A DNA stretch of 64,000 nucleotides, from NCBI GenBank assembly GCA_040285825.1, contig JAUPSS010000009.1, positions 620,001 through 684,000 on the forward strand. The letters are read 5' to 3'. Numbering within the stretch: the stretch's first letter is position 1; every line of letters begins with the position of its first letter. The position numbers were made by a program, and so were the translations under genes. Below, piece by piece: positions 5,078 to 64,000 of this stretch. This DNA comes from Eukaryota sp. TZLM1-RC. Lineage: Eukaryota; Protista; Metamonada: BaSk clade. The notes under the pieces were generated by a model. That model ran no database searches, was not told where the DNA came from, and worked only from the letters and a program-made list of their open reading frames with translations.

Positions 5078-5842
5078 TCATTTTTCATAGTGTAGTCTTT
5101 CAAAGCTTTCATTATTTGGTTTTTTAGAATTAATTCGTTCTTGTATTTCGTATTCAATGAATGGTTTGGGGAAAACATAATCACCACTACTGGTATTTGA
5201 TAATAAACATTTTTTTGAAAATTGTTCAATTGCAAACTGTGTGAAATTATTTTGATTAAATTCACTCGTATATGAATTAAACGTGTTATAATATGGTGGA
5301 TCAAAATACACAAATGAGTTTTCTGGATATGGTATGTTTTCATAAGATTCACAATAAAAATCTATATTAAATTTTTTTAATAATGTATCAATTTCAACTA
5401 AATCCTTGTATTTAATTTGTGGGTTTTTATAATTTCCAAATGAAATGTTAAATTGGTTTTTGAATTAACCCTATACATTCCACGAAAACAATGTTAATTT
5501 AAATATATAAACAATTGTGTTTTTCTTATAAATCATCAGATTGGTTGAATAAATCTCGCAATCTATAATATTTCTCAGGTGTATTTTTATTTGTAAAATC
5601 ATTTGATATATTATCAGGAGACTCTACTAATAATTCATACATTTTAATAATATATGGATTGATACCATTTGCAATTATCTTTGGATAAAAATTATTCATA
5701 TCAAAGTGATGTAAGATATTTAATAACAATCCACCACCACCAATGAATGGTTCAACATATGTTTCAAAGTTTAATGGAATGTATGGTTTTATTAAAAAAA
5801 TTCTTTGGTTTTTCCACCAACCCATTTAATGAATGGTTTCAT
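5078..5842 (-). pseudogene. dam: Dam-family (D12 class) DNA adenine methyltransferase, frameshifted
   Basis: MKPFIKWVGGKT, YVEPFIGGGGLL (motif I), CFRGMYRVNSKNQFNISFG, FVYFDPPY (motif IV) and LLSN, split across frames. Confidence 0.9.
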
Positions 5843-6680: not shown

Positions 6681-6725
6681 TGGCGCATGCCAACTATGAC
6701 TAGATTTTACTAGTCTAAAAATAAA
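6669..6725 (-). ncRNA. candidate Fanzor omegaRNA scaffold (3' part)
   Basis: Directly 3' of the Fanzor ORF. It has a GACTAG-TAAAAT-CTAGTC hairpin followed by a TTGGCAT...GATGTC stem that also appears after copies 2 and 4. Confidence 0.5.
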
Positions 6726-9630
6726 CTAAGTTCTAAGCCTACCTTCTTCACCGGATAACCAGTGATCAAATACATTCAACATATTCAAACAAGCCATCTT
6801 GTTCCTATTCCAATACTTTGCCTTGACTGCTTCTCTACTTTCTGACTTTTTACATCGTGCTTTTGCATCATTAATACACTGAGAACTTCTACATTCCAAA
6901 AGCCCATGAGGAAATTTGAACGGTGTTTTTTCAGCACTTTTAGGAATTGGATTCCTTGTTTTGATAGTTGGTTCAAACACTTTTTCAAAGCAAGAAGGAC
7001 ACTTTGATGAAGTATGGCTTTCATCAATTAAAACAGTTTGAAAACCTCGTCTAATAAAACAACTTATCCATCTATTGGAAGGAGTTGGGGGACTATGTTT
7101 GAGATTACTGATTGGTTTACGACCCAAGTCCCCAATACACAATACTGTTTTGTCTTTACCACCGAATGTTGTCAATAACTTGTTCACAATTCTTTCTTCA
7201 GTTTTTTGCCTATGGATATAACTTTGGATATTATGTATCCTCCATAAGGGTAAACTATAGAATTGTTTCACTGCATTGTAGTGTTTACACTTGGCCAACA
7301 TAAACTCTCTGAATTTGTGGTAATCAACAGTTTTTGAATCATGATCACGTAACCACGAATTCCATTCCTCGATGGTCATTGTCTGGTCTTCACCATTATT
7401 TTGTCTAACACAAAATTGTAACACTTGTTTGTGTTTTCTATTGAGACGTGACCATTCACCATATGTTAGCCTCATCCATTGATATTTTTTCAGTGGATTT
7501 GAATTGGATTCTTCCGACTGTGCTCCAAATTGAATAAAATCTCTCTTTCCAAGATCACCAAAAACCACAGTTTTATCACTATAATCTTCAGGATCAAGGT
7601 GATCAAAATAAGAGACTGATACCTTGGCAATATTTGAATCAGGTTTAAAGGTTAATCCTGCGAGATCATGTCTCACAAACTGAAAACAAATACTTATACC
7701 ATTGGTTACTGCGTAATTATTGAATTTGAAACCATTTTTTTTGAAAGAAATGTTATTAGTGTTGAACCATCTGTCCCAATAAGAATTCTGTTGATTGTGA
7801 GTTAGACTTCCAATATCAGACATACACATATAATTTTGGACTTGCTTAAATCGAGGTTTACCATCTAAATTACCCATAGCATTTTTCCCAATACCCCACA
7901 ATGTTCGCGTGTCTATTGGAAAGTATCCAGGTTTACTACCCATATTAAGTGGAATGACGCTAAACAATTTTGTCTCAATTCCTTCTAAATATTGAATTAT
8001 TTGAAATGATGGTTTCAGAAAATGTAAAGGATACTTTTCAAGGGTGTATTGCAGTATTTTAACTTGCACATTTTCTGTTCCATTACCCTCATTAATTTGG
8101 ATAATATTTGGGAAAATTATAGACAACCAGTGCTCCAATAATAATGTAACACCTGCTTCAATCAAATAATTTGTGGTTTCGAACACAACATCGGTTGTAG
8201 AATCATCAAAATATTTAATAACTTCTTGTAAAAAATATACATTAGATCAGAATTTCCAAAATTTTGCAAGTAATTAATTAATTCATTTCGCTCCCCACCA
8301 ATCATAAAATCCTTCACAATTTTCAAACGAAATCTAAAATAACTGAGAAATCTTTGGCGTTGCATATAATTCAAATGTTGCAAACTATCTGGAAGTACTT
8401 CTGTCCAATCTTCCTTCATTAGATCTTCCAAATCTTTTTTTCCCATTATATGATTAATGAATTTTTTGATATATAAATGATAATTTCTTTTGATATTCAG
8501 TTCAAAAGCAGGCCACATTTCATATTGACTCATGTATTCAAATGATCTATTTACATGGTTATAATCTAGTCTAGGCATATGGCAAATTGATGAAGTGTCG
8601 GTGTATTCAGTAACACAATGGCGATACCCAGGGAATTCAGAATTGTTATCATAAGTTCCTAACCCAAAAATAAAGTTGTTCAAATCATCACTTAACGTTG
8701 GTATTGGTTTATCGAATGCTAATTTAAACCGATGCACCTTTGAAGATAATTTTTTCAAACATATTATTGTGTGATAGAATAGTTTGTAGTCAAAATTTGA
8801 CAAATCTTCGTTCTTCATGAATTTGACTAAAAGATACTGTTTGACACAAAATGAAGTTTGTTGTCTCACAGCAGACATTACCTATAAGTAACTCTTCTTG
8901 TAATTCTCTATACCTTGCTGTAGATGAAACAGAGGTCTTTACTGTAGACCATGACTGATTTATTATTTTATCCCTTTGGAATAGAATAAATAATTTGAAA
9001 ACAAGAATTGCAACCTGAAGACAATAAGATCCTAATGTTCTCAATGCCTTATTTGAATAAAGGCTATCAATAGGTAATAAATTTTCAAACTCATCATGAA
9101 GTTTAAGTTTTGTTTCGGCAAGTAAATGGTATGCTAAAATGTTCAATGAAGCTCCATATCAAATTTTGATGAATTTTCTGGCAAACAAAAAAGTGTCCAA
9201 AATAGTGAAATTTTCATATAACTGAATTATTTCTCTCCAACGTCGATGAAGATATAATTCATTTAGATCAATTCTTTGGGACAAAATTGGAAAAATGGTT
9301 CCAAAATGTGACAATCGCACAGCCAACACAGGTAAATCAAAATTAAAAATATTATGGCCTAAGAAACCAACAATTTTTTTATCATAAGTGAATTCTGCAA
9401 ATGACTTCAATAGATGTTGTTCATGATCAAACTTGGTTGAGATTAATCTCCACTCCACTATTCAATGGTAAGGCATTGTTCCTCCCGTAACCCAACAAAT
9501 GTCAGTTCTTCCATCCGTCAATAGCAATTTAAATATCCCTAATTCACATATGTATGGAAAGCAGATATTTAAAATCGGGCTCAACGAAGTTAAACAAGCT
9601 TTTACGTCAGAGGTTTCTGTGTGACGCTTT
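6726..9630 (-). pseudogene. Fanzor1-type RNA-guided nuclease with N-terminal DEDDy 3'-5' exonuclease (copy 1)
   Basis: RuvC-I VFGDLGKRD, CIGD, RuvC-II/ZnF IDESHTSSKCPSC..HGLLEC..C and RuvC-III WNRN..ACLNM. Upstream are GHNIFNFDLPVL, LDTF and SLNILAYHLLAETK..YCLQV. It carries in-frame TGAs at 9462 and 9159 and frameshifts near 8880 and 8190. Confidence 0.85.
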
Positions 9631-9649: not shown

Positions 9650-12165
9650 TTAACCAGTTCCAACATTGACTGCACTTTATGAGATTAAATCTTGTTCGGT
9701 AAACTGTATAATGTTTTTGATTTGTAATCAATAATAATGCCCAATAATGGATCAAAATTATTATGGAGATTATTGGGAAAGCCATCCATTGATGGCATCA
9801 GAGGTATTTTCAGTGATCAAAAAGCCACCACGTGGAAAGTCTGCAGGTCTTTCTGGTCTTTCTATTGATCATATCAAAGCTGCGGTTATTTCGTTAGAAG
9901 ATTGTCTAATTTTATGCTCAAAATTTTAAATAGAGTTGTATCTGGTCAGCTCAAATATCCTAAAGAATTGAGATGTTCACGTTTGACTGCACTGGTAAAA
10001 AGCTCAAAATTGAATGTTCGTCCAATTGCAGTCTCTGAAAGTTTGCACAATATTTGTTCAGTTCGCTGCTTAAATAGATTCAATGAAATAGCAAAAAGAA
10101 TTTGTCACCGTTACAACACAAAATTATTACCACTGATGGAGTTGCTTCAGCAGTATTTGCTACAGATGTTCTATTTCATCAACATGAATCCAATGTTTGT
10201 ATGTCGTCGGAATTTAGTAATGCATTCAATTCAATTCATCGTTGCAGTATTCATGGTGCTTTGTTGAATTATTTGCCAGAATTAATGCTTTATTGACAAA
10301 CAACATATTGCACAAATTCTAATTTGCATTTTGGTAATTCCATTTTGAGTTCATCAAGTGGTGTAAAGCAAGGAGATCCGTTAGGACCTCTTTTGTTTTG
10401 TTTGGCCATTCATCCTACTTTATTACAAATTTAAGAGATGTTTCCTTCGCTAAAAATGATTGCTTATATGGACGATGTTGTTCTTATAGGTGACTTAAAG
10501 ATTGTCAGAGAAGCAACTGTATGTTTTAATGAATTATTTAACAAAATTGGCTTTCAACTTAATTTACTTAAAGGTGTTTTACTTTCGTATTCCCCAGTTT
10601 CTAAGTTGATGGTAATGAAATGCAAGCCAAATTATATTCAATTGATGCTATTCGTCATTTGGGTTCGTATTTAGGAAATAATGATGAAGTTACCAAAGAA
10701 TTGTTTGAAAAGTTAAACTCAATTTCAGAAAAAGTTGACTGAATGATGACTTTAGATATACAGAAACATATCAAATTTACCATTAAAGGACTATTTTTTA
10801 GTTCCAACTAAAAAATAATAATCATATATTTCGATCTACATATCCTCTTATCACTAAGCATTTGGCCCAAAACTTTGAAGAATTACGTGGTAAAGTCTTT
10901 TCACAATTACTGGGATGTAAAATCTTCCAAATTCCTGATCATGCTTATCTTAGTCCACATTATGGCGGTTTAGGTTGGACAAAGGTCTCTATTCTTACTT
11001 CGTGTGCTTGTATTGGTGGATGCAGAACTGCAATATTTGAGTATTCTGAAAGATTTGCCGATGGGGAAGATTTTTTAATGACAACGCAAAGTTCTACTAT
11101 TTTTGCATTAAATGAAGAAATTTCGAAAATTGATGTAAAAAAATGGAGTCGAAGCTTTTCACAATCATTCAATGGTAATATTCCTGAAAAGAATTTTTTA
11201 AACTTGAAGAAAACTCTTCGAAGATTACAGAAACGATTGGCTGGAATGTAGGAAAATGATTTTTATAAAAATATATGCAGCTCGGCTGTTTTAAATCAAG
11301 ATCTTCACTCATTGCTATTGGAAATGGGTGTTTGAGAAAATCAGTCATCAGATTCTTCACTGTTTGTAACCATTGTAACACGAAGATTTGGACTGTTTGT
11401 TACTCATGGAGCGTTTGAAATAAAGATTAGATTATATTTGAATATCCCCATTAATCAATTGTTATCAAAAGAAAAATGTATTTGTTCGAATTCACCACAG
11501 CTCACTTTGCGTCAGGCTATGAATTGTTCGAAATTGATAACTTATCGTTCTTCATTACTGGATGCTGTTGGAGACATTGTTTTTAATATGGCTCGAACTG
11601 CAAGAATTTCGTGTATCAAAGAGCCTCTGCTGAAAGAAACATTATCATTGAATAATTTTGGTTCTGATGATAGAGGTGATGTATACTGTGATTGGATTGA
11701 GAACTCTGAGCTGTTGTTGACTTTGTCTCCTGTAATGTTGCAAGAGACACTTTGGTTCAAAGAAGAAAATTTAATCCTGTAAGTGCTCTTGAATTTAAAG
11801 CTAAAGAAAAACATAGAAAATATGACAAAGATATCGAAGAAGATAATGCTGATAGAAATAGACCACTTGTTTTTATTGCTTTACTATTTTCGATAAACGG
11901 AAGACTATCAGTAAAAGCAGAAACTTTTTTGAATAATTTCCAAAAAATGGTTCAAGAAAAAACAATGAAAAGATTTGATATTTTTTTATGGCGCTCTCGG
12001 ATTCAATTTGCCATTATCAATAGATTACCTCAATTTTTCAATCGAATTAGAGAAGCTTTAGCTAGACAGCAAGCAGATCAGGATTTTGTAGAGGAAATCT
12101 TGGTTCAATGAATTTCGTCCCATTAGTTATGAGTTTATTTTGTTAAGTGTACAAGTTCAATAAAA
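9650..12165 (+). mobile_element. RLE-clade (CRE/NeSL-like) non-LTR retrotransposon family A, decayed, longest copy
   Basis: KSAGLSG, VRPIAVSE, FSNAFNSIHR, GVKQGDPLGPLLFCLAI and AYMDD (RT), then CICS..NC, RGD..D and KHRKY (RLE). Many stops and frameshifts. Confidence 0.9.
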
Positions 12166-12951: not shown

Positions 12952-14159
12952 TTACAATTGATTAGGGTTTGATTGTAAGAGGATACCTTTTTTTGATAAA
13001 TTGAACTCTATTACATCAATTTCATCATTGATGATCTCAATGTTGTTTATTTTTTTGCTTTTTTTAGTCATGTGCTTTTACTATTTTATCATCAATTATT
13101 AACATGCTTTTTTTGTGTTGAGTTTCTCTCTCTTTTACATTATCATTTTTTATTTAAAAATGTAACATTTGTCGCAAATTGAGTAGGCAACGCCAAGAAA
13201 ATTGATTAATTATGATCTTGGTTTTAAATAAATAATGTTTAATTAAATTACAAAATAAATAAATTACAGTTTGAGATAACAAGAAGATCACGGTGTATCC
13301 ACAAAGGCAGGACCTTCGATGTTGACTTTGTAGTCCTCGTCGAAGAAACTACATCGTAGTGTGTTACTAGAACTCTCTTACTGATGATTTGCAACTTGAG
13401 ATTCTGGAGAGGAGGTTGGTTGTGTGAGTGGGTGTTGTGAAATTGAAGGCACCCGAGTTGCAAATCACAGAATATGAAAAGAATGAGTTTGTCCAACTTT
13501 AAGTGTAAGTTCATGTCTGAAACCCAACAATGAAAACAGCATGAACAATGAAAAACATCTCCAAAAAAGATGAAAAAAGAACCAGTTTTAAACATTAATC
13601 ACAATGACCTCTCAAAATATATTTTCGACAAAAAAACAAGTTGACTCTTGGAATTTTACAGAATGATTGTAAGATGATTTTATCAAATTATTTGTTGTTT
13701 TTGTTTAAATGGAATTCTTAAAGGATTACAACTTGGCAGCAATAGATGAATTAAAAAGAGATTAATAAATTAATTCAAATGAAAGAATATATTTTTAGAG
13801 GATTCAAGTTGAAAAACAAATATGTCACGAGAATTGAGGTTAATGATGATGTAAAAGTATTTGAACAAGTTGAGAAAATTGTTGATGACACACGAATCAT
13901 TAAAACGGGAGTAAATAGGCATCAGTCAGAACAATTAAAAATGAACAGGTTTTTTCTAAAGTGGGAGCAAAAGTTTTATTTTGAAAAGTAGTTGGGATTA
14001 TTGGCTCAAGTTCAGGAAGTATTATCATATGGTAAAAAATTTGTCAAATGTTGAGGGAAAAACTATTGATGAAATGAAATATCGTCTTTTCCAAATGATC
14101 TATGACTTGGAGGAAAAAATAAAAGAGGAAAATTAGTTAAGAAAGAAATGTGGAAAAAT

Positions 14160-14932
14160 GAAAGTAATCGTTGATCCCGTCTTGTTAGAATCATTGGTTC
14201 TCACAAGACCTGGGATTGATTCATCCGAGTGAGGTGTTTCTGGATCATTTAAAAATCCTCCACCTCGTTTTCCTCGTACGAAGAATTCATTTTAATGATG
14301 ACTGAGTTGAAGGTTGATGTCCGTAAAGGCGACGTCCGGGAACGTATGTCCTGCTACCTGAGACGTTTTTTTCAGGCGAAATGCAGGGCTTCCGGACTGA
14401 AATTGCCTGACTCAGCCTTCATGATCAGAGTCGCCAAGGGTATTCTTCCATTAGGATTGTAGATATCTCTGAATTCTCGAATTCCGGACGAGATATTTCC
14501 CGATTTTCCTACATTGGTAAATATCGCACAGGATGACCTACTTGATTGCACGGGAATAGCTTCTTGGAAAAATTCTTCAAAGACTGTTTCTGAAAATACT
14601 GACTCTGTGCGTCAAGCTGGTATTAAGTCTCGTTCATCCCATAGGTCTCGCAATCTCACTGACGGGACATGTTTCAAATGTCATCAGAAAGGTCATCTAG
14701 CTCGTAAATGTTCCTCAAAAATGAAGCACGAAGTAAATCATCCAAACCACGTGCCTCAGTATCTTATAAATCCCCTATTTTCATTATGCTAAATGGTTTA
14801 CGAAACTGTTGAAAGAAAATGGAAAGAAGTAGTGCTGTCTTACTGATAAACTAACCTGGTAAACAGAGTATTTTTATTAATAAAGCTCTCTTTTCTTCTT
14901 TTCATCTTTGGTATTTCTGCCTAACGGCATCA
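14160..14932 (+). mobile_element. decayed LTR-retrotransposon gag fragment
   Basis: Zinc knuckle CFKCHQKGHLARKC in a stop-interrupted frame. It ends in tgcctaacggcatca, similar to tgcctaacggcaaca at 40391-40405. Confidence 0.55.
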
Positions 14933-15402
14933 CAGTCAAGGAATTCAAGACCGTTCACCAGATGAAGCTCAAAGAAGAATTCACTGTTCATGTATGAATT
15001 GTAATTGGTAAAAGAACTGATCAGGAACTGATTTCATGAAGAAGCAACAATAAAACTATCTTTTTTAAACAAAGAACAGTGTTGCAAACATTTGACAAAA
15101 GCAAAAATTGATTTGGTAAATGTAACTTTATAGTTCACTCTAAAGATAGTCAACTAATCAGATTTGATTGATTGTTTTTGGTGGGACAACTCAAACAATC
15201 TTTTTCATTTATTTTCATTTTCTGAGTTGTTGTCTGCAATAGGGAAGATATGACATTGGATATCACATTCTGTAATTATAATCAAGATCAATGCTGTAAC
15301 GTCGACCCAGCGGGTTGACGGAAATCACGTCAGACTTCATAGTTAATAGATTACCAACAAAGTCCGTTAAGATTGGGATGAGATTGGAATGTTTGTTATT
15401 TC

Positions 15403-15500
15403 TCTATTGTTGCCTTGTCTATTGGTACTTTTTCTATTGTTACCTTTTCTATTGTTACCTTGTCTTTTGTTACCATGTCTATTGTTACCTTGACTATTGA
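15403..15500. repeat. 15-bp tandem repeat, about 6 imperfect units (ctattgttaccttgt)
   Basis: Directly visible periodicity. Confidence 0.85.
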
Positions 15501-15661
15501 TGTGTTCTTTGTATTAACATGCTTCTGTTGTGATGAAGTTTCTCTCTTTTGTATCATAATTTTTTATTCGAAACAGTAAAAGCTCCAACATTTGATGCAA
15601 AATGATCTTGGTTTTGATATAAATTACACACTAGCTGTTTAATCAATTGATTTATTCACAA

Positions 15662-16330
15662 TCACAAAACCAAACCTTCACTTTCTTCATCTTCACTTAT
15701 TGTTAGCTTTCTTGTTCCAAATTCGAGTCTCAAGGAATAAAAGAAGCTGATCACAGTCAATGTTGATACATACTGACCTATAATAGAAATGTTCCTCCCT
15801 GCTTCAGTCCCGATCATGGGGCCTATAACGTAAGCAAAGAATGCTATACAGAGGATTGAGAGAACAGCGATACGGTAAAACATCCAAAACTTACACGTTC
15901 GGACGATTTTCTTGCTTCTGTAGGTATTGACTGTTATCAACAATACAGTGATGACAGCGGCGGTGAAGAACAAGCCAGCAGCAGAACCATGCCAGATTGT
16001 AGCATCGTTTGTTGATATGCAGCCCGTTGCGGCTAAAGAAGGACCCGCGACGATAGCTAGCAGACGTATCTGACGAATGACATGTTGCTTAAAGTTATGA
16101 GTTTTTTCCACAATGGACAAGTAACTTATAATTATGAAGGTAAGAAATACCCCAGCGACAGTAAGAGCAAAGGCGAATAATGGGTAGATTGGGAATCTTG
16201 CACCACTTGCGCTGAGATAGATCAACCTTCCTTGATATTCTGTGAAGACCATTTTAGCACCAATTACACAGATGGTGAGTGTTGTTATAATGAACGTACA
16301 TCCTGCTATTAACAATGTAGAGAGCCGCAT
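15662..16330 (-). CDS. Frag1/DRAM/Sfk1-family multi-pass membrane protein
   Basis: Six hydrophobic segments, IYLSASGARFP and the WHGSAAGLFF motif. Confidence 0.75.
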   Translation of the reverse strand: MRLSTLLIAGCTFIITTLTICVIGAKMVFTEYQGRLIYLSASGARFPIYPLFAFALTVAGVFLTFIIISYLSIVEKTHNFKQHVIRQIRLLAIVAGPSLAATGCISTNDATIWHGSAAGLFFTAAVITVLLITVNTYRSKKIVRTCKFWMFYRIAVLSILCIAFFAYVIGPMIGTEAGRNISIIGQYVSTLTVISFFYSLRLEFGTRKLTISEDEESEGLVL

Positions 16331-16506
16331 GTTGATGATGTACAATAACAAATAGAGAAACTCTCTTTAAATGCTGTCAGACATCTTTTACAGATAAGTG
16401 CGAAGTTGGCAATGAAGGGTATATCCGAACAATTGGTGTTTAGTAGATACTATCTACAGTGGTATCCTTTAACTTTCATTCTTGGTCATTTACTGATACT
16501 TCTAGA

Positions 16507-17807
16507 ATGCATCTTGTACTTTTAGTTGTGGTTTTGGTAGCCACTGCTGCTGCAAGCACAGAGTTTGAGATCGCTGCTCCTTTTGCCAATACTAATATAA
16601 AGTCTGCACTGTCAAACTGGGATTCAAAAGGCTCTGTCCATCTTTCCACCGAAGCTGTGGTTCTTACCCCTCGTATGAAGTCTATGAAAGGGTTCCTTTC
16701 ATACAACAAGAAAATTGAGGCATCTGCCTTTGATCTCACCATGGATGTCAACATCGAGGGTTCACGTCTTGGTGGGGCCGAAGGAATGATTATTGCCTTC
16801 AGTGAAAAACCTCAAAAAGAAGGTACTTTCCTTGGCATTAGTCATAGTGTCCCCTCGGTTGTTGTGGGGCTTGACACCGTATGTTCATGCCAATATCTCA
16901 CCTCTAGTATCCCAACAGTCGTTCAATCACAGGATCCTCTCGCCCCGGTATTTTTATTGGTAATCTTGATGGATACACGATCCCATCAGCTTCCATGGAC
17001 TACTCAGACATTGAAGTATCATCTTGCAAGTCTCAATTGCGTAACACTCCCACCAAATTGAGAATCAAGTACTCCAACAAGGTACTCAGCCTATATATTC
17101 AAAATCAAGAGTCCCTCAGCCCTGACGTTCCATGTGCTCGGGCAAACATGGAACTTCCCTCTTCCTTTTACCTCTCTCTTGGAGCAATGACTGGTGTGCT
17201 TGGTGATCAGCACGCAATTACTACCATGAAGCTGGTCACCAAATCTGACGCAGATCCCTTCCAAAACGCGGCAACCTACCATCGTGACCCCGTCCAAAAT
17301 TCCTCTGGCTATAATCAACACTATGACCAACAACACCAAGAAGTTGAATATAATAGCTTTCAAAAATCTAGTGATGTGGATACAAAGTCCTTGATGAATG
17401 TAATCACCAATTTGCACAACACCCTTGCTACGATGGAGAAGTCTATTAAACAGCTCTCTGCGAACAACCATGCTTCAAAATTACCTTCTTTGGAACAGTC
17501 TGTTAATGAAGTAGTTACGAAAATGCAGGGACTCGCTGAGAAGGTTACCATGATAGAAAAGAATGCATTCAAGAAGCTTGAAGTCAAGATGGAGCAGGAT
17601 AATGCAGGTGTAGACACCAAACTGCAGGCAATCACTAAAGCCATTGATCAACTCTATGGAAAGTATGATCAATTGGTCTCTCACTTGGACGAGAACAGTT
17701 CTCAAAGTGATATTTGGTTCTTCATTGTGCTTTTCCAGAGCATAGCAGTGGTAGGTTATTGTGCTTTCAGGCGTTTCAAGGGTAAGCAAAAGAATCACAT
17801 GCTTTGA
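16507..17807 (+). CDS. L-type lectin cargo receptor (ERGIC-53/VIP36-like), one intron 16879-16907
   Basis: Signal peptide, LTP..KS.KG, GAEG, VGLDT/Y, coiled coil, TM helix and a KKXX-like tail KNHML. A 29-nt GT-AG intron joins the two listed ORFs. Confidence 0.85.
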
Positions 17808-18162
17808 TACTTTTTTTTGAAAATTACAATAAAGATTATAAAAAGCAAACCATATGAGTCGATCTGATAATAAAATATGAAAATATATTATTATTATCTA
17901 CAACTTAATTTATTCCGACCAAAAACTAAACAACAAACTTAAAATTCTAAAGTTTCGTAACCCAAATCACCCAAAAAGAATCAACTAAATGAAAATATGA
18001 AACTTAGGAAATACACTTAATTTAAATAACTACAATGAATTTTTATATATAATTATATAGAAATTGTGCAGTCACATAATATTCAGTATTTAATAGTGTA
18101 TTCAGTCAAAACAAAACAACAAACAAACGTAAGAGAGTATTCCAAAAAATCAGGTATTGTTC

Positions 18163-18234
18163 GGAGTTGTAGCTTAGGGGTAGAGCGGCTGATTGCAGAT
18201 CAGCAGGTCACGTGTTCAAATCACGTCAACTCCT
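18163..18234 (+). tRNA. tRNA-Cys(GCA)
   Basis: GGAGTTG/CAACTCC acceptor stem, CTGAT-TGCAG-ATCAG anticodon arm, GTTCAAA T-loop and a T-run terminator. Confidence 0.93.
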
Positions 18235-18424
18235 TTTTGTAAATTACATTATCTGACCCACACATGAACACATGAAGTACCTTACCTTTTGGGGTTTGTG
18301 TTGTCTGTTGTTCATTTAAATTATTGGCTATAATTTGTTAGTTAAAAAGTGGGACATTCACTATAAATCAGTGACATTCATAGCATTTGAAAAAATGACC
18401 ATATAACATAATATAATAATGACA

Positions 18425-18740
18425 GGAACCAAATTTATGTCATGTGCAAATCATATAGAGTAGATTCCTTTTTAGAGCCTTTGGTATCAAAATTAATTCT
18501 TGATAACCCCAATATTGATAGTGTGTGCTACAATAGAGCTTCAATGGGTCTGACAAGAGATTAGGTTGTTCCCGGCTTAAATGGAAGCTTGACCATTTTA
18601 GATGCCATCTTCATTGACCATTGTAATTTTTATGACGAACATTTCATTAATTCTGATGTCAATAATCCTCTTCTTGCTCGGGAAAAATACAAACTTGCTA
18701 AATACGCGAAACCTATTTCTTCTGTCGATAAAAATTCAAT
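18425..18740 (+). mobile_element. RLE non-LTR fragment (family C)
   Basis: Near-identical to the reverse complement of 36200-36449 (RASMGLTR..VVPGLNGS). Confidence 0.75.
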
Positions 18741-19829
18741 AAGGAAGTTCAGTTTTGGAGAATGTAGCGCCTTAATTGTGTGTTTGATGATTTTGTATTC
18801 GGTATTTGATAAATAAAGAGCTATATGCTAATGAACAAGTTGTCAAACACATCAACTACAAAGACAGAAATACCTTTTATCCATAGGCAATGTTGAAGTA
18901 CCTGAAATAAGTGTGCATTAGATGAAAAAAAACAAAACAATAAAGAACAAACAAAGCAAAAACAATATGTAAAAACAATTTGCCAATTCTTCTCGATCTC
19001 CACCAAACCAGCTGACAATAGTCAAATCTAGTCAAATGTTGTGTGTAGTTCACCTCAAAAATTAAACTCAAAAATTCAGATGTAGTTTGTACCAAAAAAT
19101 TTTCACAAAAATTTTCACAGTCCTTCTGCTACTTCTTTCAATTTTGGTGGTGTTGATTTCCCTAAAAATAGATATTTGACAAATGAATCATTTGTTTGAA
19201 AAATGTTCTATTTCGATATAGGATAACCAACTTTATGGTATGGTCAACACTTATAGTCATCTTCCCGTTGTGTATGGTCATCGTCATTGAAGGTGATATT
19301 GGTGAAATTAAAATAATCATTTGGTCTCAACTATTTTCAATGTTACCTTGTGGCCCGTAAGCTCTCAACGATCCATCGAATAACTTCCTTCATGTAATGA
19401 AAGCTGACCAAAAAAATGTCAGCTTGGGCTTCTAAAAACGTCATAATTTAACCAACATTCATAGTGCTGATTTTTGTTCACTTTTATAACGCATTGGTGG
19501 TGAGTCATCGTCTTTCTACATTACTGTTTTTTCAGAAACAAGAATTTAAAACTACCGATTGTGCGTTATCAATGAGAGACTTGAAAAATGAAATATAGAT
19601 GATAGAAATGTGTAAAAAATTACGAAACACCAAAGCCTTGAATTGATGGTGAATTGTTTGAATTTCTTAGCTGAATTATTTCCTTTTGAAGTTTCCACAA
19701 GACAAGTAGTCGCAAATAGTTGTATTTTATTGATGAGAATAGGTCTACAATGGAACCTATGTGTAAAGATTTCAATTTCCAAGCAATATTTGTATAAACC
19801 GCTTATAGCTTTCTGCGAAAAAATGATGC

Positions 19830-20856
19830 CGTGTTCCGAAAAATTATGAACCCACAAAATATGGCGACCAAAAAAATTGGCGAATTCCTACAGGTATTCA
19901 AAAATTCGCCATCATTTTTCGCCTATTATTAGCTTTTAAAAATAAACAAAAAAAAATACCAGATTTATTTCAGAATCAATACTATAAAATTAAACAATAA
20001 TTTCATCTTCTTCTGAAGACAAATCATCTGCATCAATCCATTCAGGTCAATGTACTGCTTCAATTACAACTTCATTACCACCAGGATTCATCAAACTGTG
20101 CTCAATGATTTTATTCATTGTTCTCCAACCTTTTTGATGATATTGGAGACAATTTGATTTGATATATTGCCATGCCTCAAAAATCCATTCTCCAATTTTG
20201 GGCTTAATAATGGAGGTGGCTACATCTAACTTGACATTATTTGGTTGAATGCCAGCATTGAGGTCTTCGAGAATTTTTTCAGTGCACCAAACAGTAAATT
20301 TTGACTTCAGTTGACCTTTGAATACTATATTCACAGCAACATCTCAAATAGAAAAATGATCGGCTTAGCAGGAATTTCATAAAAGTCATGATTGAGTTCT
20401 GAGATGAAGGGTTTCAGTTGCTTTATTCTATGAGACCAATGTGGATCCCATAAAATTGCAACTTTCAAGCCATATATTTCAGCCTCACCGTTTTTCTGAA
20501 GCTCTTGACGCTTTTGCATAAGGTATGGCCTAACAGTTCCACTGATATATTCTAAAATTGTCTTTTTATTTTGAAACTTTGTAGAATTTCCATTCTTTTT
20601 ATCACTGGGTTGATTACCGAGTTTCCTAAATTTTTGGGCGCCAAAAAAATTGGGCGTTTTGGGTGATCAGAAAAAAATCGCCCAATTAATATGCGCCCAA
20701 TTTTTCGTCATAATTCTACCCCTTGTTTCTAAAATCAGATCTATGTCTTGTTTATAGATATATGATATGATATGACAAAAAAGTTAGGCGATAAGATAAA
20801 AATCGCCTAATTAATAGGCGCCCAATTTTTTGGCGTTCAAAATTTTAGGCATGACT
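19830..20856 (-). mobile_element. internally deleted pogo/Tc1-mariner (DDE_1) DNA transposon
   Basis: ILWDPHWSH, IPA, VNIVFK..LK..F..W and IKPKIGEWIFEAW motifs. Iterated ggcg-cc-aaaaaaatt-ggcg subterminal motifs at both ends form imperfect inverted termini. Confidence 0.75.
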
Positions 20857-26407: not shown

Positions 26408-26692
26408 TTACAAGGGTTGGTGCTTTGATAGTTCTAAATTACCATCAAGACCTTTGAATACCTCAAAGGAATGTTCCTCAACTCTATCACCTCTTTGAGT
26501 TTCGACGAGGAGCTTATAATTCGTTCCAGCTACCACCTGAGATCCTGCGGCCTTGACTCTATTCAACTCATGAGGCAGAATTGAGTTTGACATCATGTTA
26601 AGCCGTTCCATTGCAAATGTTACTGCTTCTACTACATCGGAGTCTGAAATACTGCGTTCAGTATAGCCACCACAAAGAAAAGTATTAGTCAT
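26408..26692 (-). CDS. cystatin/stefin cysteine protease inhibitor
   Basis: N-terminal CGG and QVVAGTNY. Confidence 0.92.
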   Translation of the reverse strand: MTNTFLCGGYTERSISDSDVVEAVTFAMERLNMMSNSILPHELNRVKAAGSQVVAGTNYKLLVETQRGDRVEEHSFEVFKGLDGNLELSKHQPL

Positions 26693-28080: not shown

Positions 28081-28944
28081 CTACGCCAAGAACTGACGTT
28101 TTCTTGAAGAATTCATATAAGGACGCAATGTAAACTCAACTTCTGCTTCCTCCATCTCCAATGAACCAAGCAGAATCTTATAAGGCCGGAGCACAAACCG
28201 GGGTCCAGCTTCAGCAAGTTCTACTTCTTTTCCTTTATCATCAAAGGTGTGATGTCGGAATACAATAAAATCGTTTCTGTTTGCAAAAGTTATAACTCTT
28301 TTAGAATCTACTTTGGGTACGGGGAACAAATGTTTCAAGATCTTAGTGATTCTGCTACCAAGTTTGCTGTTGAGACCATCAAATATCAAGTGGGGAATTG
28401 CTTCAGACATTGGTTGAACATCAGGAACATCATGCCGAAGGACAGCATTGGAGATAGAGAAGAAAGCTGTTGGTCCATGTGGCATGTGAGATACAACCAT
28501 CCCATCAGGTTCTCCTCTCGTTTCATGAAGTATTATCAGATCTGTGACATCATGACGACGACTGACGTCCACAAGCTCATTAACAGTGGTGGTACCGCGA
28601 TTGACACGTTCTGCAAAGGGAAAAACAAGCCTGAGTTCCTTGGCAAATTGGAGTAATCTGGTTGATGGAGATCGGGAAGTGGTTATTAATATTTTAGGAT
28701 CTCTGGTGGTTGCTGTAGCATATTCATCATCAAGGAAGGAAGTACCTTCCATAGTTCTAGCATCTTCCGCTATTATTTGTTCTTTAAGTGAGTCAGCTTC
28801 TTCCCTAAGTTCACTTGGAATACGGCGACCTTCAGCAAGGGCTTTCCTGATCTGACTCTTCTTCTCCATGTCTTCTTTAGCTTCATCTTCAACTGCTTTT
28901 CTGAAAAGGTACTCCTTGCGAAGTCGTATAACACGTCGCTGCAT
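28081..28944 (-). CDS. IMP4: U3 snoRNP protein Imp4 (Brix domain)
   Basis: RLRKEYLFRK, DPKILITTSRSPSTRL, HETRGEPDG..SHMPHGPTAFF and EAGPRF. Confidence 0.95.
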   Translation of the reverse strand: MQRRVIRLRKEYLFRKAVEDEAKEDMEKKSQIRKALAEGRRIPSELREEADSLKEQIIAEDARTMEGTSFLDDEYATATTRDPKILITTSRSPSTRLLQFAKELRLVFPFAERVNRGTTTVNELVDVSRRHDVTDLIILHETRGEPDGMVVSHMPHGPTAFFSISNAVLRHDVPDVQPMSEAIPHLIFDGLNSKLGSRITKILKHLFPVPKVDSKRVITFANRNDFIVFRHHTFDDKGKEVELAEAGPRFVLRPYKILLGSLEMEEAEVEFTLRPYMNSSRKRQFLA

Positions 28945-29699: not shown

Positions 29700-32252
29700 A
29701 TCGATACAATTTGTGAAGACTATGGACGAAAATCAACAATGCTCTTTTCAGGTAACAATTTTGATTCAATTTTTTGCAGCTATTTGTCAATCCATGAAAT
29801 TTATTAAAATCCCCTACGGACATGGATGAGGCAATCTGGCATATAAAATGATAAATGAAAAGAAAATCAAACTTCATAAGTAATTTTCCCATATTTTGCC
29901 AATTGATTGTTTTGCTACTTCTCCACTGAGACAAAATTCGATTCAATATGGGCATCATGATTGTATCCTTTGTCTGAAACTTTTCATGCTGTTTCAGAAA
30001 GACAATTTTATATTATCATCTTATAAAACCATTCGAGCAACCGTCAACTCAATGGTTAAACATTCAAATGTGGTACTCAAATTGAAAGAAACTGCTGTAA
30101 AATTTCAACAATTACGTATTCACACCACTTGTTGCTTAACGCTGTATTTACAGTCTTGTTTTGAACGTAATTTTATACCACCACGAATATCTGCCCAATT
30201 ATATGAATCATTAATGGCCAGAATTCGTTATATTACAGCTGAATATTATGGGTAAGTAATGGTGAAACCAGAGAGTGCATTTCCAGAGGATTTTGAAAAC
30301 TTTGGTTATGGTGAAGGAGATTATGAATTATCGACTTCCTTTGAACAACAAAAGTTGAACACAACTATAAGTTATGTAGACCATTTGAGATATGGGCCTG
30401 AGCTTTTTCCACGATTTCCAACTGATGGATTCAGTAGACCACCTGAGTATATGGCCCCAGTAATGTTTGCCAATGTTGAAAATAATTTGAAATTAAATTA
30501 TGAAAAACATATTAATCGAATTATTAATATTTATTTTGACAAACCAGATGTGGAAAATGTGTTAGCAAAAATGTATAAGCTGGGTGGATACCCAACGCCA
30601 TTAGCTACTATTATTTCACTGTATAGATTTAGGTTTCCTCAATCCAAAACCTTGTTTTTAGTTGATGATAGAGATTGCTTGAATTCTGTGTTTCATCATT
30701 GTGAAAATATTTCAGATTTTCTGAATGATGAATTTTTCGCTTTATGTGAACAACATGATATAAGAAATAATGAACTTAGAGACATATTTGAAGGTCTTAT
30801 TGAACCATTTACTTGTCAAATTGAGAATTTGGTCACTGACGAGAATTTAGTTGATAACATATTTCCAGTGGATATACATTTTTTTGCAGACGCTGTGGAA
30901 ATAGATCATCAACTTTTTCTAAAACTAGGAATCACAATTGCCCATTATATTTCCAGTAGAGAGGTAAAACCTTATCATATTTCTCCTGTTTCCACCATTG
31001 TAGGCCCTGGATATTTTCTTATTGATACAAAAACTATATGGACAATCATTAGACAAACATTGATGGACGATTTGTTGCCTGATGAGAAATTAAAAATGGT
31101 CAATACACTAGCCCAAATTCATAAACCCAAACCACCTGAACAATTTGACTTATGGTTTAATAATTCTCTATTTGAACCAACCAATGTTCAAACAAAAGAG
31201 CTATAAATTCAACAACATTATCCACACAGATGGATTTAATATTGGAGTGGAATTTGTTCGTCAGCATTTACAAGGTCAGAAATGTAAGCCAGAAAAGAAG
31301 GCTAGTATTTCGGATTTATATATTGATGATGTTGAAACTTTTCAAGACAAACGAATTGTTGTTTGTGATCCTGAAAAACTTGATTTATTGTATTTTGGGA
31401 GTAAAAAGACTGATCAGGAACTAGCCATGGTGCCTGAACATGAAACTGAACAGCAAAGAAATAGTCGGGTGATGAATCAACACAAGAAATTCAAATGGTT
31501 GAGACTGACTCAGATATCCTCGTCCTTGAAAAGTAGGATGATTGAAAAACAAAAACGTAGGGCGACAAAGTATATTGAGGCAGATTACGACAGGAACCAA
31601 TTGATAGAGTCCAATTAAATGACAATCGAAGATGCAAACACCGAATTATCCGCTTTTGCTGCCAATTCGGCAACTTTTACAGAGTTCTCAAACTTTGTGG
31701 TTGCCAAACTTCGGCAAGTATTTTTGACAATTGACTTTTATAGTCTTGACTTGTGGAGCATTCATTAAATGCAACCTTTCATTCACAAGCAAAAGACTGC
31801 AAGTTGGTTGTTAAAAACCTGGTTCAGCAGTTTGGCAATCCAAAAGACACTTTTATGCTAATGGGTGATTATGGTCAAAAAGGTTCCAAGAATTTACAAC
31901 ATCAAAGACCTACTAGAGGCATTGGATGGATTCAATTTCTGAAAAGAAATGGTTAAAGTATTGATGATTGATGAGACTTTCACTTCAGCAAAATGTCCTG
32001 TTTGTTTTGAAAGTTTTGAAAAGGTTGCTACGTTTTTGAGAGTAACAAATCCCAGATTCTATAAAAGAGAAAAGACTTCTGTTACTACATGTCATGGTTC
32101 ATTAGCTTGTAACAGCGAGAGTTGCAAATTCGGTAACAAAGGCTCGACAAAGCTTTTCAATAAAAAATATACTGACTTGTCTGATTATGCTTGTAATTGC
32201 TGAAGCTGGAATGCGTGGTAATGAAAGACCTCAGTATCTGTGTAGTAGATAG
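29700..32252 (+). pseudogene. Fanzor1-type nuclease with N-terminal DEDDy exonuclease remnant (copy 2)
   Basis: KFIKIPYG..GNLAYKMINEKKIKLH..LPID..QYGHHDCILCLKLF aligns with copy 1. Further motifs are GPGYFLIDTKT, IHTDG, VCDPEK, MGDYG, IDETFTSAKCPVC, HGSLAC and ERPQYLCSR*. Multiple stops and frameshifts. Confidence 0.85.
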
Positions 32253-42099: not shown

Positions 42100-43250
42100 T
42101 AACCATTTGTATATTCTATCTCGAATCATCACGCAACTTCTTCGCTGTTCATTTTCATGTTGAAGAATAGCTATCAATTCTCTGTCAATTTCTTTTCTGC
42201 CATACAACAGCTCATGCTTTCCATGAGCTTAGACATCAATGTGTTTTTTTCAAAAACAACATCAACTTTATCAATAATAAATCAAAAACTCTGTGATTTA
42301 TGTTGAATTTATAATTCTTCTGTTTGAATATTGGTTGGTTTCGAGATTGTTCGACCACAAGTTATATATACAGAATCTGCTTTATTTTTATTATATAAAT
42401 CAATTTTTCCTATTAACAATCGCTGTCAAATACTGAGCTTGCAACACTCTTAAGCCACCGCTCATGGTGCCTTTCTAACATTTTACTCCATCAGATAACC
42501 GTATACTGGATTGGGTGGTTGGAAACATGTGGTCTTGTGTTTCTAACATTTTGGACTTCTCCAGACTTCCAGAGAATAGATCGTCAAATAATGTTTGTCC
42601 ATATGGTTCTCGTATCAATTGGAAAATATCCTGGACCTACATTGGTTGATAGGAAGGGAACGTGATAAGGTTCCCCCTCTCTACTGGGAATAGATTGAGT
42701 AACCGTAATTGCTGGCTTCAAGAATATCTGAGGATCGTTTTCAACAGCATCTGCAAGAAAATCCACATGAACTGGAAATATATTGTCAACCGGACTTTCA
42801 TCCGTGATTTGATTCTCAATTTGACAAGTAAGTGGTGTTATAAGACCATAAAAAATTCGTCACGTTTATTGTTTGTAATATCATGATGTTGACATAAATC
42901 TAAAACTCGTCATCCACAAGATCCAAAGTATTATCTTATGCAAGTCTTAAGGAATTCCAGTAATCTTTATCATCAACTAAGAACAAGATTTGGAATTGTG
43001 GAAGATTAAATCTAAAAATGAAATCAAAGAAAGCAATGATATTGTGTATTGAGCTCGCTTGTGAATTTCTGCTAACACATCTCAGACAACTGTTTTCTCA
43101 AAATAAACATTCATGAAACTATTGATTTGTGTTTCATAAATATATTTCAGAACTGTTTTCAGAATTTTCAAATATTATAGGGCACATGTGCTCTGAAGCT
43201 CTACTAAAACCATCAGTTAGTTGCAAACTGGTAATTGTGGAAATTGTTGA
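42100..43250 (-). pseudogene. internal fragment of a Fanzor1-type gene (copy 3, related to copy 2)
   Basis: TDGFSRASEHMCP, DFLADAVENDPQIFLK, VGPGYFPIDTRTIWT, NQPIFKQKNYKFN and HELLYG..HENEQ..YKWL are collinear with copy 2. Confidence 0.78.
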
Positions 43251-62612: not shown

Positions 62613-64000
62613 TTAAGTTGATCTTTTCAAAACTTGAGGACTTTCATATTTATCAATTTAGATGCTGATCATCAACATGAATCATATTAAGAACAACAGT
62701 GACATTACGATTCCATAGACATCTATATTTGTTGCAAGTGAGTAAATTATGTCTAAGGACCGTTGGAGTCCTTGCTCTCCTGTATGGTCTTGGGTTTGGT
62801 ACTCCATGCTTCTTCACATTTCACCTCTTTTTTCCTCGAGTACACATGCATGTCATAGACAACTTGTTCTATATTCATCCAACAGCAACAGACGGAATTT
62901 GCGTTTTTTAAACATCTTTCGATAACCAACATTCTTTGTAAGTGCTTGATGTTTAAAATTGGTTTGCTTCCAATCACCCATCACTACAATGTTATCTTCT
63001 GACCTCCAAACTTATTGTCAAATTCATCCATCCATTTTGCTTCAAAGCTCTCTGTGACCATGAATCTTCGCAGTTCCTTAATTCTTTATTGAAGTAAAAA
63101 GCTCCATCATGGAGAGAAAAGTTGTTTTTTTGCCTTGCAGTAGTTTAGGAATTTTTCATGATGTAGAGTTTTTTGAAAATTGTTTTAATTCTTCTTTTCA
63201 CTGCTTTACAGTTTTTTGTTTTGAATAATCCATGATTCTTTACCATCCTTATATAATATTTGATGGTCTTTGTTTAGAGTTTCTCTCCTCCTTCGTGGAG
63301 CAGTCAGCTTCTTGAAAGTATATTCCTTTATTTTTGCTTTCTTGTTTTCATTTGGAGGAGGGGGATTTTGTTTTGGCCCGAAGTCTAGAATCTTTTGTTT
63401 TGTCTTTTTGTTTGTTTTTCATTCTATTAATAAAGCCTCTATTTCTTCCCTTGTTTTTTCATGATACCATTCGTCCCATTCTAATCTTGTATCTGTTGGG
63501 GTTGAGTGTGGTTCAGTTAACCTGTTGGGATTTGGGCAATTTATTTTTCGTTTCCCAGTCATCAATTGGTCCCTAATACCAGGGTTGCTTACTGTGAAGG
63601 TATTGTTTATCAGCTCATATCGCGGAATTTCAGTCAAGTACGGATCTTTTTCATCTTCTTCGGGCTTCCTAAGGCGACTCTTCCCAGCTTTATCATTTCG
63701 TATGAGATGTAACAGTAAAACTTTAGCATCAGTCCTCACAGAAAAATAAAAGCAATAATGATGGAAAACTCTTTTTCCCGTCCACATTATCCTTTTCCAA
63801 TATTGATGTTGGAATTTGTCCAACTTTCCACCCAGCAGCGCTTCAAAATATTTCGGATAATGGGATTAAAAATCTGTAAATTGCCTGGGTATTCCAGAAG
63901 GTATCTTAGTGGTCGGAAGTGCAAATAAATTATACTTAAAATGAGGATTGTTTGTGAAAGAATTATTTTCCAAATAAGCAATTCCTTAAACAAACAAAAA
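62613..64000 (-). pseudogene. Fanzor1-type nuclease, C-terminal half (copy 4; continues beyond window)
   Basis: FYFSVRTDA, VSNPGIRD, VVMGDW, LLLLDEYRTSC, RHNLLTC..LWNRNV.VVLNM and ESPQVLKRST*. Many stops and frameshifts. Confidence 0.8.

Follow-up and report, generated by a model that had tools for sequence, protein, structure and literature searches.

To our knowledge, every Fanzor, TnpB or Cas12 effector described to date contains a single nuclease, and where an exonuclease has been attached, this was the work of engineers, with mixed results. Here we describe a protein family of the genus Skoliomonas in which a 3'-5' exonuclease of the type found in family B DNA polymerases (PolBs) is joined directly to a Fanzor1 protein. 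Broken copies of its gene are located in a stretch of 64,000 nucleotides (contig JAUPSS010000009.1, positions 620,001 to 684,000), to which we refer as the window. The window belongs to a genome recorded as 'Eukaryota sp. TZLM1-RC' (GCA_040285825.1), which is treated here as Skoliomonas litria, a free-living anaerobe among the metamonads that inhabits soda lakes (PMC11316075). An earlier note, made by a model from the letters of this stretch, had proposed a conserved exonuclease-Fanzor architecture, which we have followed up by computational analysis.

The C-terminal part of the protein resembles the Fanzor1 proteins SpuFz1, PpFz1 and GtFz1, with which it is homologous over the RuvC and TNB regions and probably over REC, and with which it shares the Asp and Glu of the RuvC site and the zinc ribbon. 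The Asn at the third catalytic position is as in GtFz1. Like Fanzor1 genes, the Skoliomonas genes are eukaryotic, present in multiple copies and carried on mobile elements. Unlike Fanzor1, the Skoliomonas protein is preceded by a basic Ser/Lys-rich linker, by 2A-like peptides and sometimes by an Ulp1-like protease. The N-terminal part shows the same ExoI, ExoII and ExoIII motifs and the same fold as the proofreading exonucleases of Pol delta, Pol epsilon and herpesvirus UL30, but it comes without palm, fingers and thumb and contains a charged insertion of about 45 residues after ExoI. Its sequence similarity to real PolBs is no better than E~1e-5.

In CRISPR adaptation, DEDDh exonucleases that are fused to Cas2 or Cas1 trim 3' overhangs to the footprint of the protein. 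These domains differ from the one in Skoliomonas, since they are of the DnaQ type instead of the PolB-type DEDDy class, prokaryotic, attached to an integrase and not to an effector, and active on prespacers. Engineered fusions of TREX1, TREX2 or T5 exonuclease with Cas9, Cas12, TnpB and Fanzor follow the same tethering concept and change end processing (PMC12923547, PMC13434818). They are man-made and combine unrelated exonucleases via linkers, whereas the Skoliomonas fusion is natural, of PolB type, free of a linker between both domains and evolutionarily old. We did not come across a natural exonuclease-Fanzor fusion in the literature that was searched, in line with the earlier note, which had not recognized the architecture as described. 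The papers retrieved on Fanzor in combination with exonucleases were engineering papers and reviews, a broader search brought up no Fanzor paper among its best-ranked results, and in the Fanzor surveys consulted such an exonuclease domain goes unmentioned.

Exonuclease and Fanzor in a single reading frame

Relatives of the window copies were identified in three Skoliomonas genomes, S. litria, GEM-RC1 (GEMRC) and TZLM3-RCL (RCL), whose loci and proteins are designated below by numbers preceded by L and P. RCL contains uninterrupted open reading frames (ORFs) of 2027 codons (L005, 6001-12084) and 1096 codons (L007, 5001-8291), whose translations are identical to P0047 and P0048, respectively. 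As reference we used P0024, a GenBank gene model from S. litria that jumps 25 nt across a frameshift. When compared to P0024, the proteins P0048, P0031 and P0047 each yield one high-scoring segment pair over residues 218-1231, which covers the region from ExoI to the C-terminus of Fanzor and which is 28% identical in case of P0047 and P0048. At the S. litria locus L003, an ORF of 611 codons (9872-11704) spans the junction and a second one of 683 codons holds the remainder, both being split by one extra T in a run of T (11685), while in P0027 (S. litria L004) and P0003 (GEMRC L001) the junction is located inside one ORF.

The earlier note had proposed to search for intact ORFs and for a stop and separate start between both domains. 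The two RCL frames are uninterrupted, and neither a stop nor a new start between exonuclease and Fanzor is found in the ORFs of L001, L003, L004, L005 and L007. From ExoI to the stop codon, the protein encompasses at least about 1015 residues, which exceeds the previous estimate of about 970, and whole ORFs encode 1096 to 1233 residues or more. The junction is kept across three Skoliomonas genomes, and we regard it as nearly certain that exonuclease and Fanzor form one protein.

An exhaustive HMMER search with the exonuclease domain against 1.84 billion representative proteins returned 17 matches at E<=1e-3, the best seven of which are Skoliomonas proteins. The other ten are weaker, and the four that were examined are all genuine PolBs, for example from Aenigmatarchaeota, with E~1e-5 to 1e-4. 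Outside of the three Skoliomonas genomes, no exonuclease-Fanzor was detected by this search with the exonuclease domain, which a much more divergent exonuclease would escape. In GenBank, the relatives are labelled as hypothetical proteins that carry PF03104 and DUF8286.

The exonuclease domain

The N-terminal domain is a DEDDy 3'-5' exonuclease of the family-B-polymerase type that comprises about 285 residues and that continues without linker into the N-terminal strand of Fanzor. In relatives it matches PF03104 with values of up to E=1.8e-16. Twelve sequences, which represent six lineages and which apart from a few near-duplicate pairs are 26-36% identical, were aligned (A1), and all five catalytic residues are invariant, namely D17 and E19 in ExoI, D138 in ExoII, and Y238 and D242 in ExoIII. 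The motifs take the form D-I/L-E-T (ExoI), N-x3-F/L-D (ExoII) and Y-x3-D (ExoIII), and the set is complete in the family and incomplete in the two window copies of the fusion (copy 1 and copy 2).

An AlphaFold2 model of the domain reached a predicted local distance difference test (pLDDT) score of 80.4 and a predicted template modelling (TM) score of 0.82. Its best Foldseek matches in the PDB (6p1h, 3iay, 8ojc and 8twa; E=1e-10 to 1e-9, probability 1.0, TM 0.56-0.61) are the exonuclease domains of Pol delta, herpes simplex virus 1 (HSV-1) polymerase and Pol epsilon. The fold of the N-terminal region, which the earlier note had wished to see modelled, is thus predicted to be of the PolB-type DEDD class, with E=1e-10 to Pol delta, and its assignment of the motifs to the proofreading domain of family B polymerases is supported by the PF03104 match, the five DEDDy residues and the fold. 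None of the family members matched the polymerase domain PF00136, and the exonuclease leads directly into Fanzor; the protein is therefore not a polymerase.

The Fanzor1 part

A profile of the family (A3) matches SpuFz1 with E=7.7e-45, PpFz1 (9CF0) with E=1.6e-40 and GtFz1 with E=3.3e-13. In these alignments, the RuvC segments GDLGKRD, IDESHTSS and WNRN coincide with D383, E541 and D606 of SpuFz1, and the zinc-ribbon cysteines (CPSC ... ECRSSQC) align with those of SpuFz1 and PpFz1, while the match to PF07282 is weak (E=0.14 and 0.033). On the N-terminal (WED/REC) side, the A3 profile adds weak stretches only (SpuFz1 residues 417-588), and an AlphaFold2 model of the Fanzor part calculated from 13 sequences was poor (pLDDT 41.8).

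The third RuvC motif reads W-N-R-N in every lineage with a C-terminus, including the third Fanzor copy in the window and a minus-strand copy at L003, and NRD in the decayed copy P0020. We considered whether the Asn at this position would render the RuvC site inactive and rejected this possibility, since GtFz1 carries the same WNRN and is active, and since the SpuFz1 mutant D606N is hyperactive. GtFz1 naturally contains an Asn at the third position (N658) and cuts DNA (Xu et al., PMC11423790), and SpuFz1 D606N exceeds the activity of wild type (PMC11423790). As GtFz1 also aligns to the family profile in this region ('wwnrn'), the D-E-N triad corresponds to a known active variant. With all five exonuclease residues being conserved across lineages that are 26-36% identical, and with the RuvC triad and the zinc ribbon being conserved in every copy that retains a C-terminus, both nuclease centers are probably functional in live copies.

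Broken copies in the window

For the analysis of the window, ORF pieces were searched separately and stops and frameshifts were left as found. Copy 1 is located on the minus strand with the following features:

6681..9434, minus strand: copy 1, 5'-truncated dead remnant that corresponds to residues ~330-1233 of P0024 plus a 45-nt tail (blastn against L003)
9336..9356, minus strand: ExoII, H-N-I-F-N-F-D, within the PF03104 match on 9458-9159, Asp invariant in alignment A1
9159..9161, minus strand: in-frame stop (KFIKI*), Arg in intact copies
9003..9026, minus strand: ExoIII, Y-C-L-Q-V, Tyr kept and catalytic Asp replaced by Val (YCLQD in intact copies)
8928..8954, minus strand: junction SWSTVKTSV, last exonuclease helix leading directly into the first Fanzor strand, in the same frame and found in all lineages
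8881..8882, minus strand: 8-bp deletion relative to L003, frameshift
8244..8245, minus strand: 7-bp deletion relative to L003, frameshift
7539..7562, minus strand: RuvC-I, F-G-D-L-G-K-R-D, aligned with VIDPNKRD of SpuFz1
6990..7031, minus strand: RuvC-II Glu, L-I-D-E-S-H-T-S-S, followed by the first zinc-ribbon CxxC (SpuFz1 alignment; weak PF07282)
6798..6812, minus strand: RuvC-III, W-N-R-N-K, with Asn as third catalytic residue (profile alignment 'wwnrn' with GtFz1, 9CER)
6681..6725, minus strand: right end of the element including its 3' tail, hairpin GACTAG-N6-CTAGTC at 6698-6715 (candidate omegaRNA or right-end structure), an end shared by four S. litria copies

This copy is 96.5% identical to the near-intact copy at L003 over 2788 columns (blastn), with homology extending from window position 9434 to 6680/6681, and 92-96% identical to P0024 (tblastn). 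The ORF pieces 9458-9159, 9146-8790, 8878-8162 and 8186-6726 (minus strand; region 9785-6726) belong to one broken gene, and the frame leading from ExoII via ExoIII directly to the start of Fanzor, which had been read in the earlier note, is confirmed. The same holds for ExoII (HNIFNFD, 9356-9336), which is found on a piece (9458-9159) that matches the PolB exonuclease family PF03104 with E=5e-6 (26.5 bits at a gathering cut-off of 23), and for YCLQV as ExoIII, which is placed at 9026-9003 with its Asp converted to Val. In contrast, the stretch HTETS..PYICELG (about 9630-9470), which had been regarded as a degraded ExoI, turned out to be flanking sequence, since homology to L003 starts only at 9434, and a comparison at the DNA level finds zero homology to this locus upstream of that position. 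ExoI is absent from copy 1, and in intact copies it is located about 110 codons further upstream (S-I-D-I-E-T). As proposed, the C-terminal part is Fanzor1-like, with the 486-residue piece 8186-6726 matching SpuFz1 (8GKH, E=2.3e-13) and PpFz1 (E=3.1e-11). Besides the two frameshifts, copy 1 contains two further deletions relative to L003, which are both in-frame.

The ratios of nonsynonymous to synonymous substitutions (dN/dS) between copy 1 and L003 amount to 0.42 for the exonuclease and to 0.36 for Fanzor, at small counts; such values within the family, which are obtained from few substitutions, are only suggestive as a sign of selection, for which the invariance of catalytic residues at about 27% identity provides the stronger argument.

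The other Fanzor copies of the window are listed below:

29755..32243, plus strand: copy 2, divergent lineage, 5'-truncated within the exonuclease, with stops and frameshifts, 86% identical to P0029 and ~27% to P0024
29797, plus strand: KFIKIPYG of copy 2
29947-29970, plus strand: ExoIII Y-x3-D of copy 2
30019-30045, plus strand: junction SYKTIRATV of copy 2
62656..63175, minus strand: third Fanzor remnant, C-terminal, with LLDEYRTS and WNRN
42599..43162, minus strand: fourth Fanzor remnant, short middle fragment

Copy 2 is 27-34% identical at the level of the protein (tblastn) and contains the same junction, with KFIKIPYG starting at 29797 and SYKTIRATV at 30019, which agrees with the earlier reading. 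It breaks off at about residue 187 of P0029, so that ExoI and ExoII are gone and only the end with ExoIII is left. With their truncations, stops and frameshifts, copy 1 and copy 2 are both pseudogenes, as had been stated.

The mobile element

At 90% identity, copies form clusters with 18 members in GEMRC and 11 in S. litria, which points to a recent amplification of the element. The right end is precise. It is located 47-52 nt past the stop codon and followed by unrelated flanks in four S. litria, two GEMRC and two RCL copies, whereas left ends vary and the shared unit encompasses 3.6-5.2 kb. About 15-25 nt inside the right end we find a hairpin (window 6698-6715, minus strand; L003 13740-13760; L006 7655-7675; L007 8310-8330), whose stems differ between lineages yet pair (GACTAG/CTAGTC, GGCCGG/CCGGCC and CTTACC/GGTGAG), with five pairs in the RNAalifold analysis being changed on both sides. 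These properties fit a candidate omegaRNA or a putative structure for end recognition.

Upstream of the exonuclease-Fanzor and in frame with it, four lineages carry 2A-like peptides that follow the pattern DLTxxGD(V/I)(E/H)xNPGP. They are found in proteins P0010, P0032, P0035, P0049 and P0050 and at these locus positions:

L003, 8620 and 10085: 2A motifs
L004, 9590 and 10283: 2A motifs
L006, 2312: 2A motif

Their sequences are GDVEANPGP, which occurs twice, in S. litria, GDVETNPGP and GDIESNPGP in GEMRC, and GDVHKNPGP and GDIHPNPGP in RCL; within the window no 2A motif was found. We know of 2A peptides only in RNA viruses and in non-long-terminal-repeat (non-LTR) retrotransposons and not in Fanzor elements. 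Non-LTR retrotransposons carry the same D(V/I)ExNPGP near the start of their ORFs (Ingi, L1Tc, APE-type; PMC3708506), whereas here the motif is located ahead of the Fanzor ORF, sometimes twice around an Ulp1-like protease, and in RCL with His in place of Glu.

The arrangement with two 2A motifs flanking the protease is found in S. litria. In GEMRC, a gene for a C48 protease is located directly upstream (L006 2755-4083) and matches PF02902 above its cut-off (E=8.5e-9), while the versions from S. litria and RCL remain below it (E=0.0033 and 0.074), with motifs of the HW... and NDCGIF type being visible. Beyond the 2A motifs, ORFs extend into unrelated upstream coding sequence (P0047; L003 7717-9150; L004 8052-9958), which in P0047 from RCL is a complete DEAH helicase in frame into the element and in S. 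litria a beta-helix-like repeat protein. This organization suggests that the element may be expressed together with upstream ORFs of host or other origin, by in-frame insertion or by read-through, and that its protein is released via 2A.

We also considered whether the exonuclease-Fanzor gene belongs to a retrotransposon and rejected this assignment, since the reverse transcriptase (RT) unit of L004 is flanked by repeats of its own and located outside of the shared Fanzor unit. At L001 (GEMRC; 3405 and 7009), the right flank of one copy opens with bases (CAACATTG) that are also the first ones at the left end of the element in L006, which could reflect a tandem or circle junction, a target core or chance.

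Discussion

The described features can be combined into a mechanism in which both nucleases act in succession on DNA. An omegaRNA derived from the 3' end of the element would direct the RuvC site to its target, and after cleavage the tethered exonuclease would degrade exposed 3' ends, initially the displaced flap of the non-target strand on the side of the target-adjacent motif (TAM). This would prevent a simple resealing of the break and remove the non-homologous 3' tail, and repair could thereby be channelled into copying the element from a homologous template (homing), with the upstream 2A-like peptides serving to free the protein from the ORF translated ahead. In structures of Fanzor and TnpB, the N-terminus (WED side) is TAM-proximal and remote from the guide 3' end, and an exonuclease rigidly fixed to the WED strand would thus be placed close to the TAM. 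A parallel, which is not evidence, is found in yeast, where proofreading by Pol delta trims short 3' tails in double-strand-break repair. We consider this guided-cut mechanism as the best overall explanation, with a probability of about 0.5. Somewhat less than even is our expectation for its central component, the processing of DNA 3' ends by the exonuclease after the guided cut, and we would only tentatively propose the broader view of a natural 'cut-and-chew' effector, in which guided RuvC cleavage would be combined with an exonuclease acting on the cut or on the guide, with parasitic expression by 2A and read-through and, in some cases, with an Ulp1-like protease.

Several observations weigh against this mechanism. 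Homologous recombination normally makes use of the strand that a 3'-5' exonuclease degrades. No terminal inverted repeats, target-site duplications or common target were found at eight copy ends, no transposase is encoded in the shared unit, and the omegaRNA candidate consists of a terminal hairpin with few compensatory changes. All S. litria and GEMRC loci that were examined contain at least one frameshift, with uninterrupted ORFs being found only in RCL, and part of these frameshifts may be assembly errors and not real. The Skoliomonas assemblies were built from Nanopore R9 reads and polished with Illumina data (PMC11316075), which calls for caution with single-base homopolymer frameshifts in repeats. 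Fusions with TREX1, TREX2 and T5 exonuclease all impaired editing by evoMmeFz2 (PMC12923547), and a benefit of an exonuclease fusion is therefore not automatic.

The main rival to a role in processing cut DNA places the exonuclease on the guide, where it would trim the 3' end of the omegaRNA, at which the guide arises by read-through into flanking DNA, to the footprint of the protein and thereby set guide length, resembling the trimming of prespacers by DEDDh domains on Cas1-Cas2 or of piRNA 3' ends. In its favor, the element ends 47-52 nt past the stop codon without obvious terminator, so that transcripts would enter the flank, and the apparent translation from upstream ORFs via 2A implies long read-through transcripts without 3' processing of their own. 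Some PolB exonucleases, such as the one of phi29, also degrade RNA 3' ends. PolB-type proofreading domains are by default DNA exonucleases, however, other Fanzor1 proteins produce their guides without such a domain, and the N-terminus would be remote from the guide 3' end, which leaves guide trimming an unlikely but serious contender. Less probable still appears a contribution of the exonuclease to the movement or copying of the element, for example by trimming flaps or 3' ends of intermediates, with Fanzor being a mere attachment. The lack of a transposase in the shared unit would be consistent with such a role, and constant right ends in combination with variable 5' ends, and the 5' truncation of copy 1, copy 2 and the copy at L002, point to copying that starts from the right end. 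These truncations are perhaps later deletions or insertions; an RT-encoding stretch is found just past the 5' break of copy 1. The maintenance of a linker-free fusion over deep divergence argues for a joint action with Fanzor.

Two further readings would deprive the exonuclease of its activity or the fusion of its reality. The domain could be a non-catalytic structural or DNA-binding extension, or the whole family extinct debris, as might be suspected since copy 1, copy 2 and most of the examined loci are broken and since copy 1 has lost the ExoIII Asp. We regard this as very unlikely in light of five catalytic residues that are invariant in six lineages at 26-36% identity, the two uninterrupted RCL ORFs and the presence of copies with more than 90% identity within each genome, which speaks for recent activity. 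Finally, a chance PolB fragment beside Fanzor or an error in the gene model could mimic a fusion, and the annotated model P0024 does jump 25 nt across a frameshift. An artefact is refuted by the recurrence of the same junction, which is present in at least six lineages from three genomes and in raw ORFs without interruption, and no PolB polymerase domain is located nearby, so that the residual chance of this reading is negligible.

If the broader view of a 'cut-and-chew' effector is correct, the family would define a new functional class of effectors in the obligate mobile element-guided activity (OMEGA)/Cas12 superfamily and a ready-made model for compact editors that process DNA ends by themselves. 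The persistence of such a fusion over deep divergence, without loss of either active site, would imply that guided cleavage combined with 3'-5' end processing is selectable, and it makes a natural scaffold with linker-free geometry available for copying. The fusion would also offer a direct route to testing the purpose of Fanzor cuts in eukaryotic transposons, such as homing and an influence on which repair pathway is taken. Expression via 2A behind upstream ORFs gives a hint as to how a protist could translate DNA elements that lack a promoter. For dozens of 'hypothetical proteins' across the three Skoliomonas genomes, the analysis supplies a label at the level of function.

Further observations on the loci and the window

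Fanzor remnants cluster together. At L003, a divergent exonuclease-Fanzor remnant (14228-15394, minus strand) with internal deletions, which is 29% identical in the exonuclease and which reads S-R-N at RuvC-III, is arranged tail-to-tail with the near-intact copy. An S. litria copy at L004 is interrupted by an LTR retrotransposon (13258-20283) with aspartyl protease, RT-RNase H and integrase.

RT-like ORFs in the window (9747-11251, plus strand) begin about 300 nt past the 5' break of copy 1, and RT ORFs (PF00078) are also located beside Fanzor copies at L002 (433-3390) and L004 (5484-7484). The window also holds about nine instances of a repeat of about 357 bp, for which L004 4454-4809 is an example.

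About 860 bp past the right end of copy 1, an ORF fragment (5526-5825, minus strand) clearly matches a D12-class N6-adenine DNA methyltransferase (Dam-like; PF02086, E=1.2e-11), which is unusual in a eukaryote and which may be transposon-carried or horizontally acquired. Amid the transposon remnants, the window also contains host genes, coding for a Brix-domain (Imp4-like) protein (28081-28944, minus strand) and a cystatin (26408-26692, minus strand).

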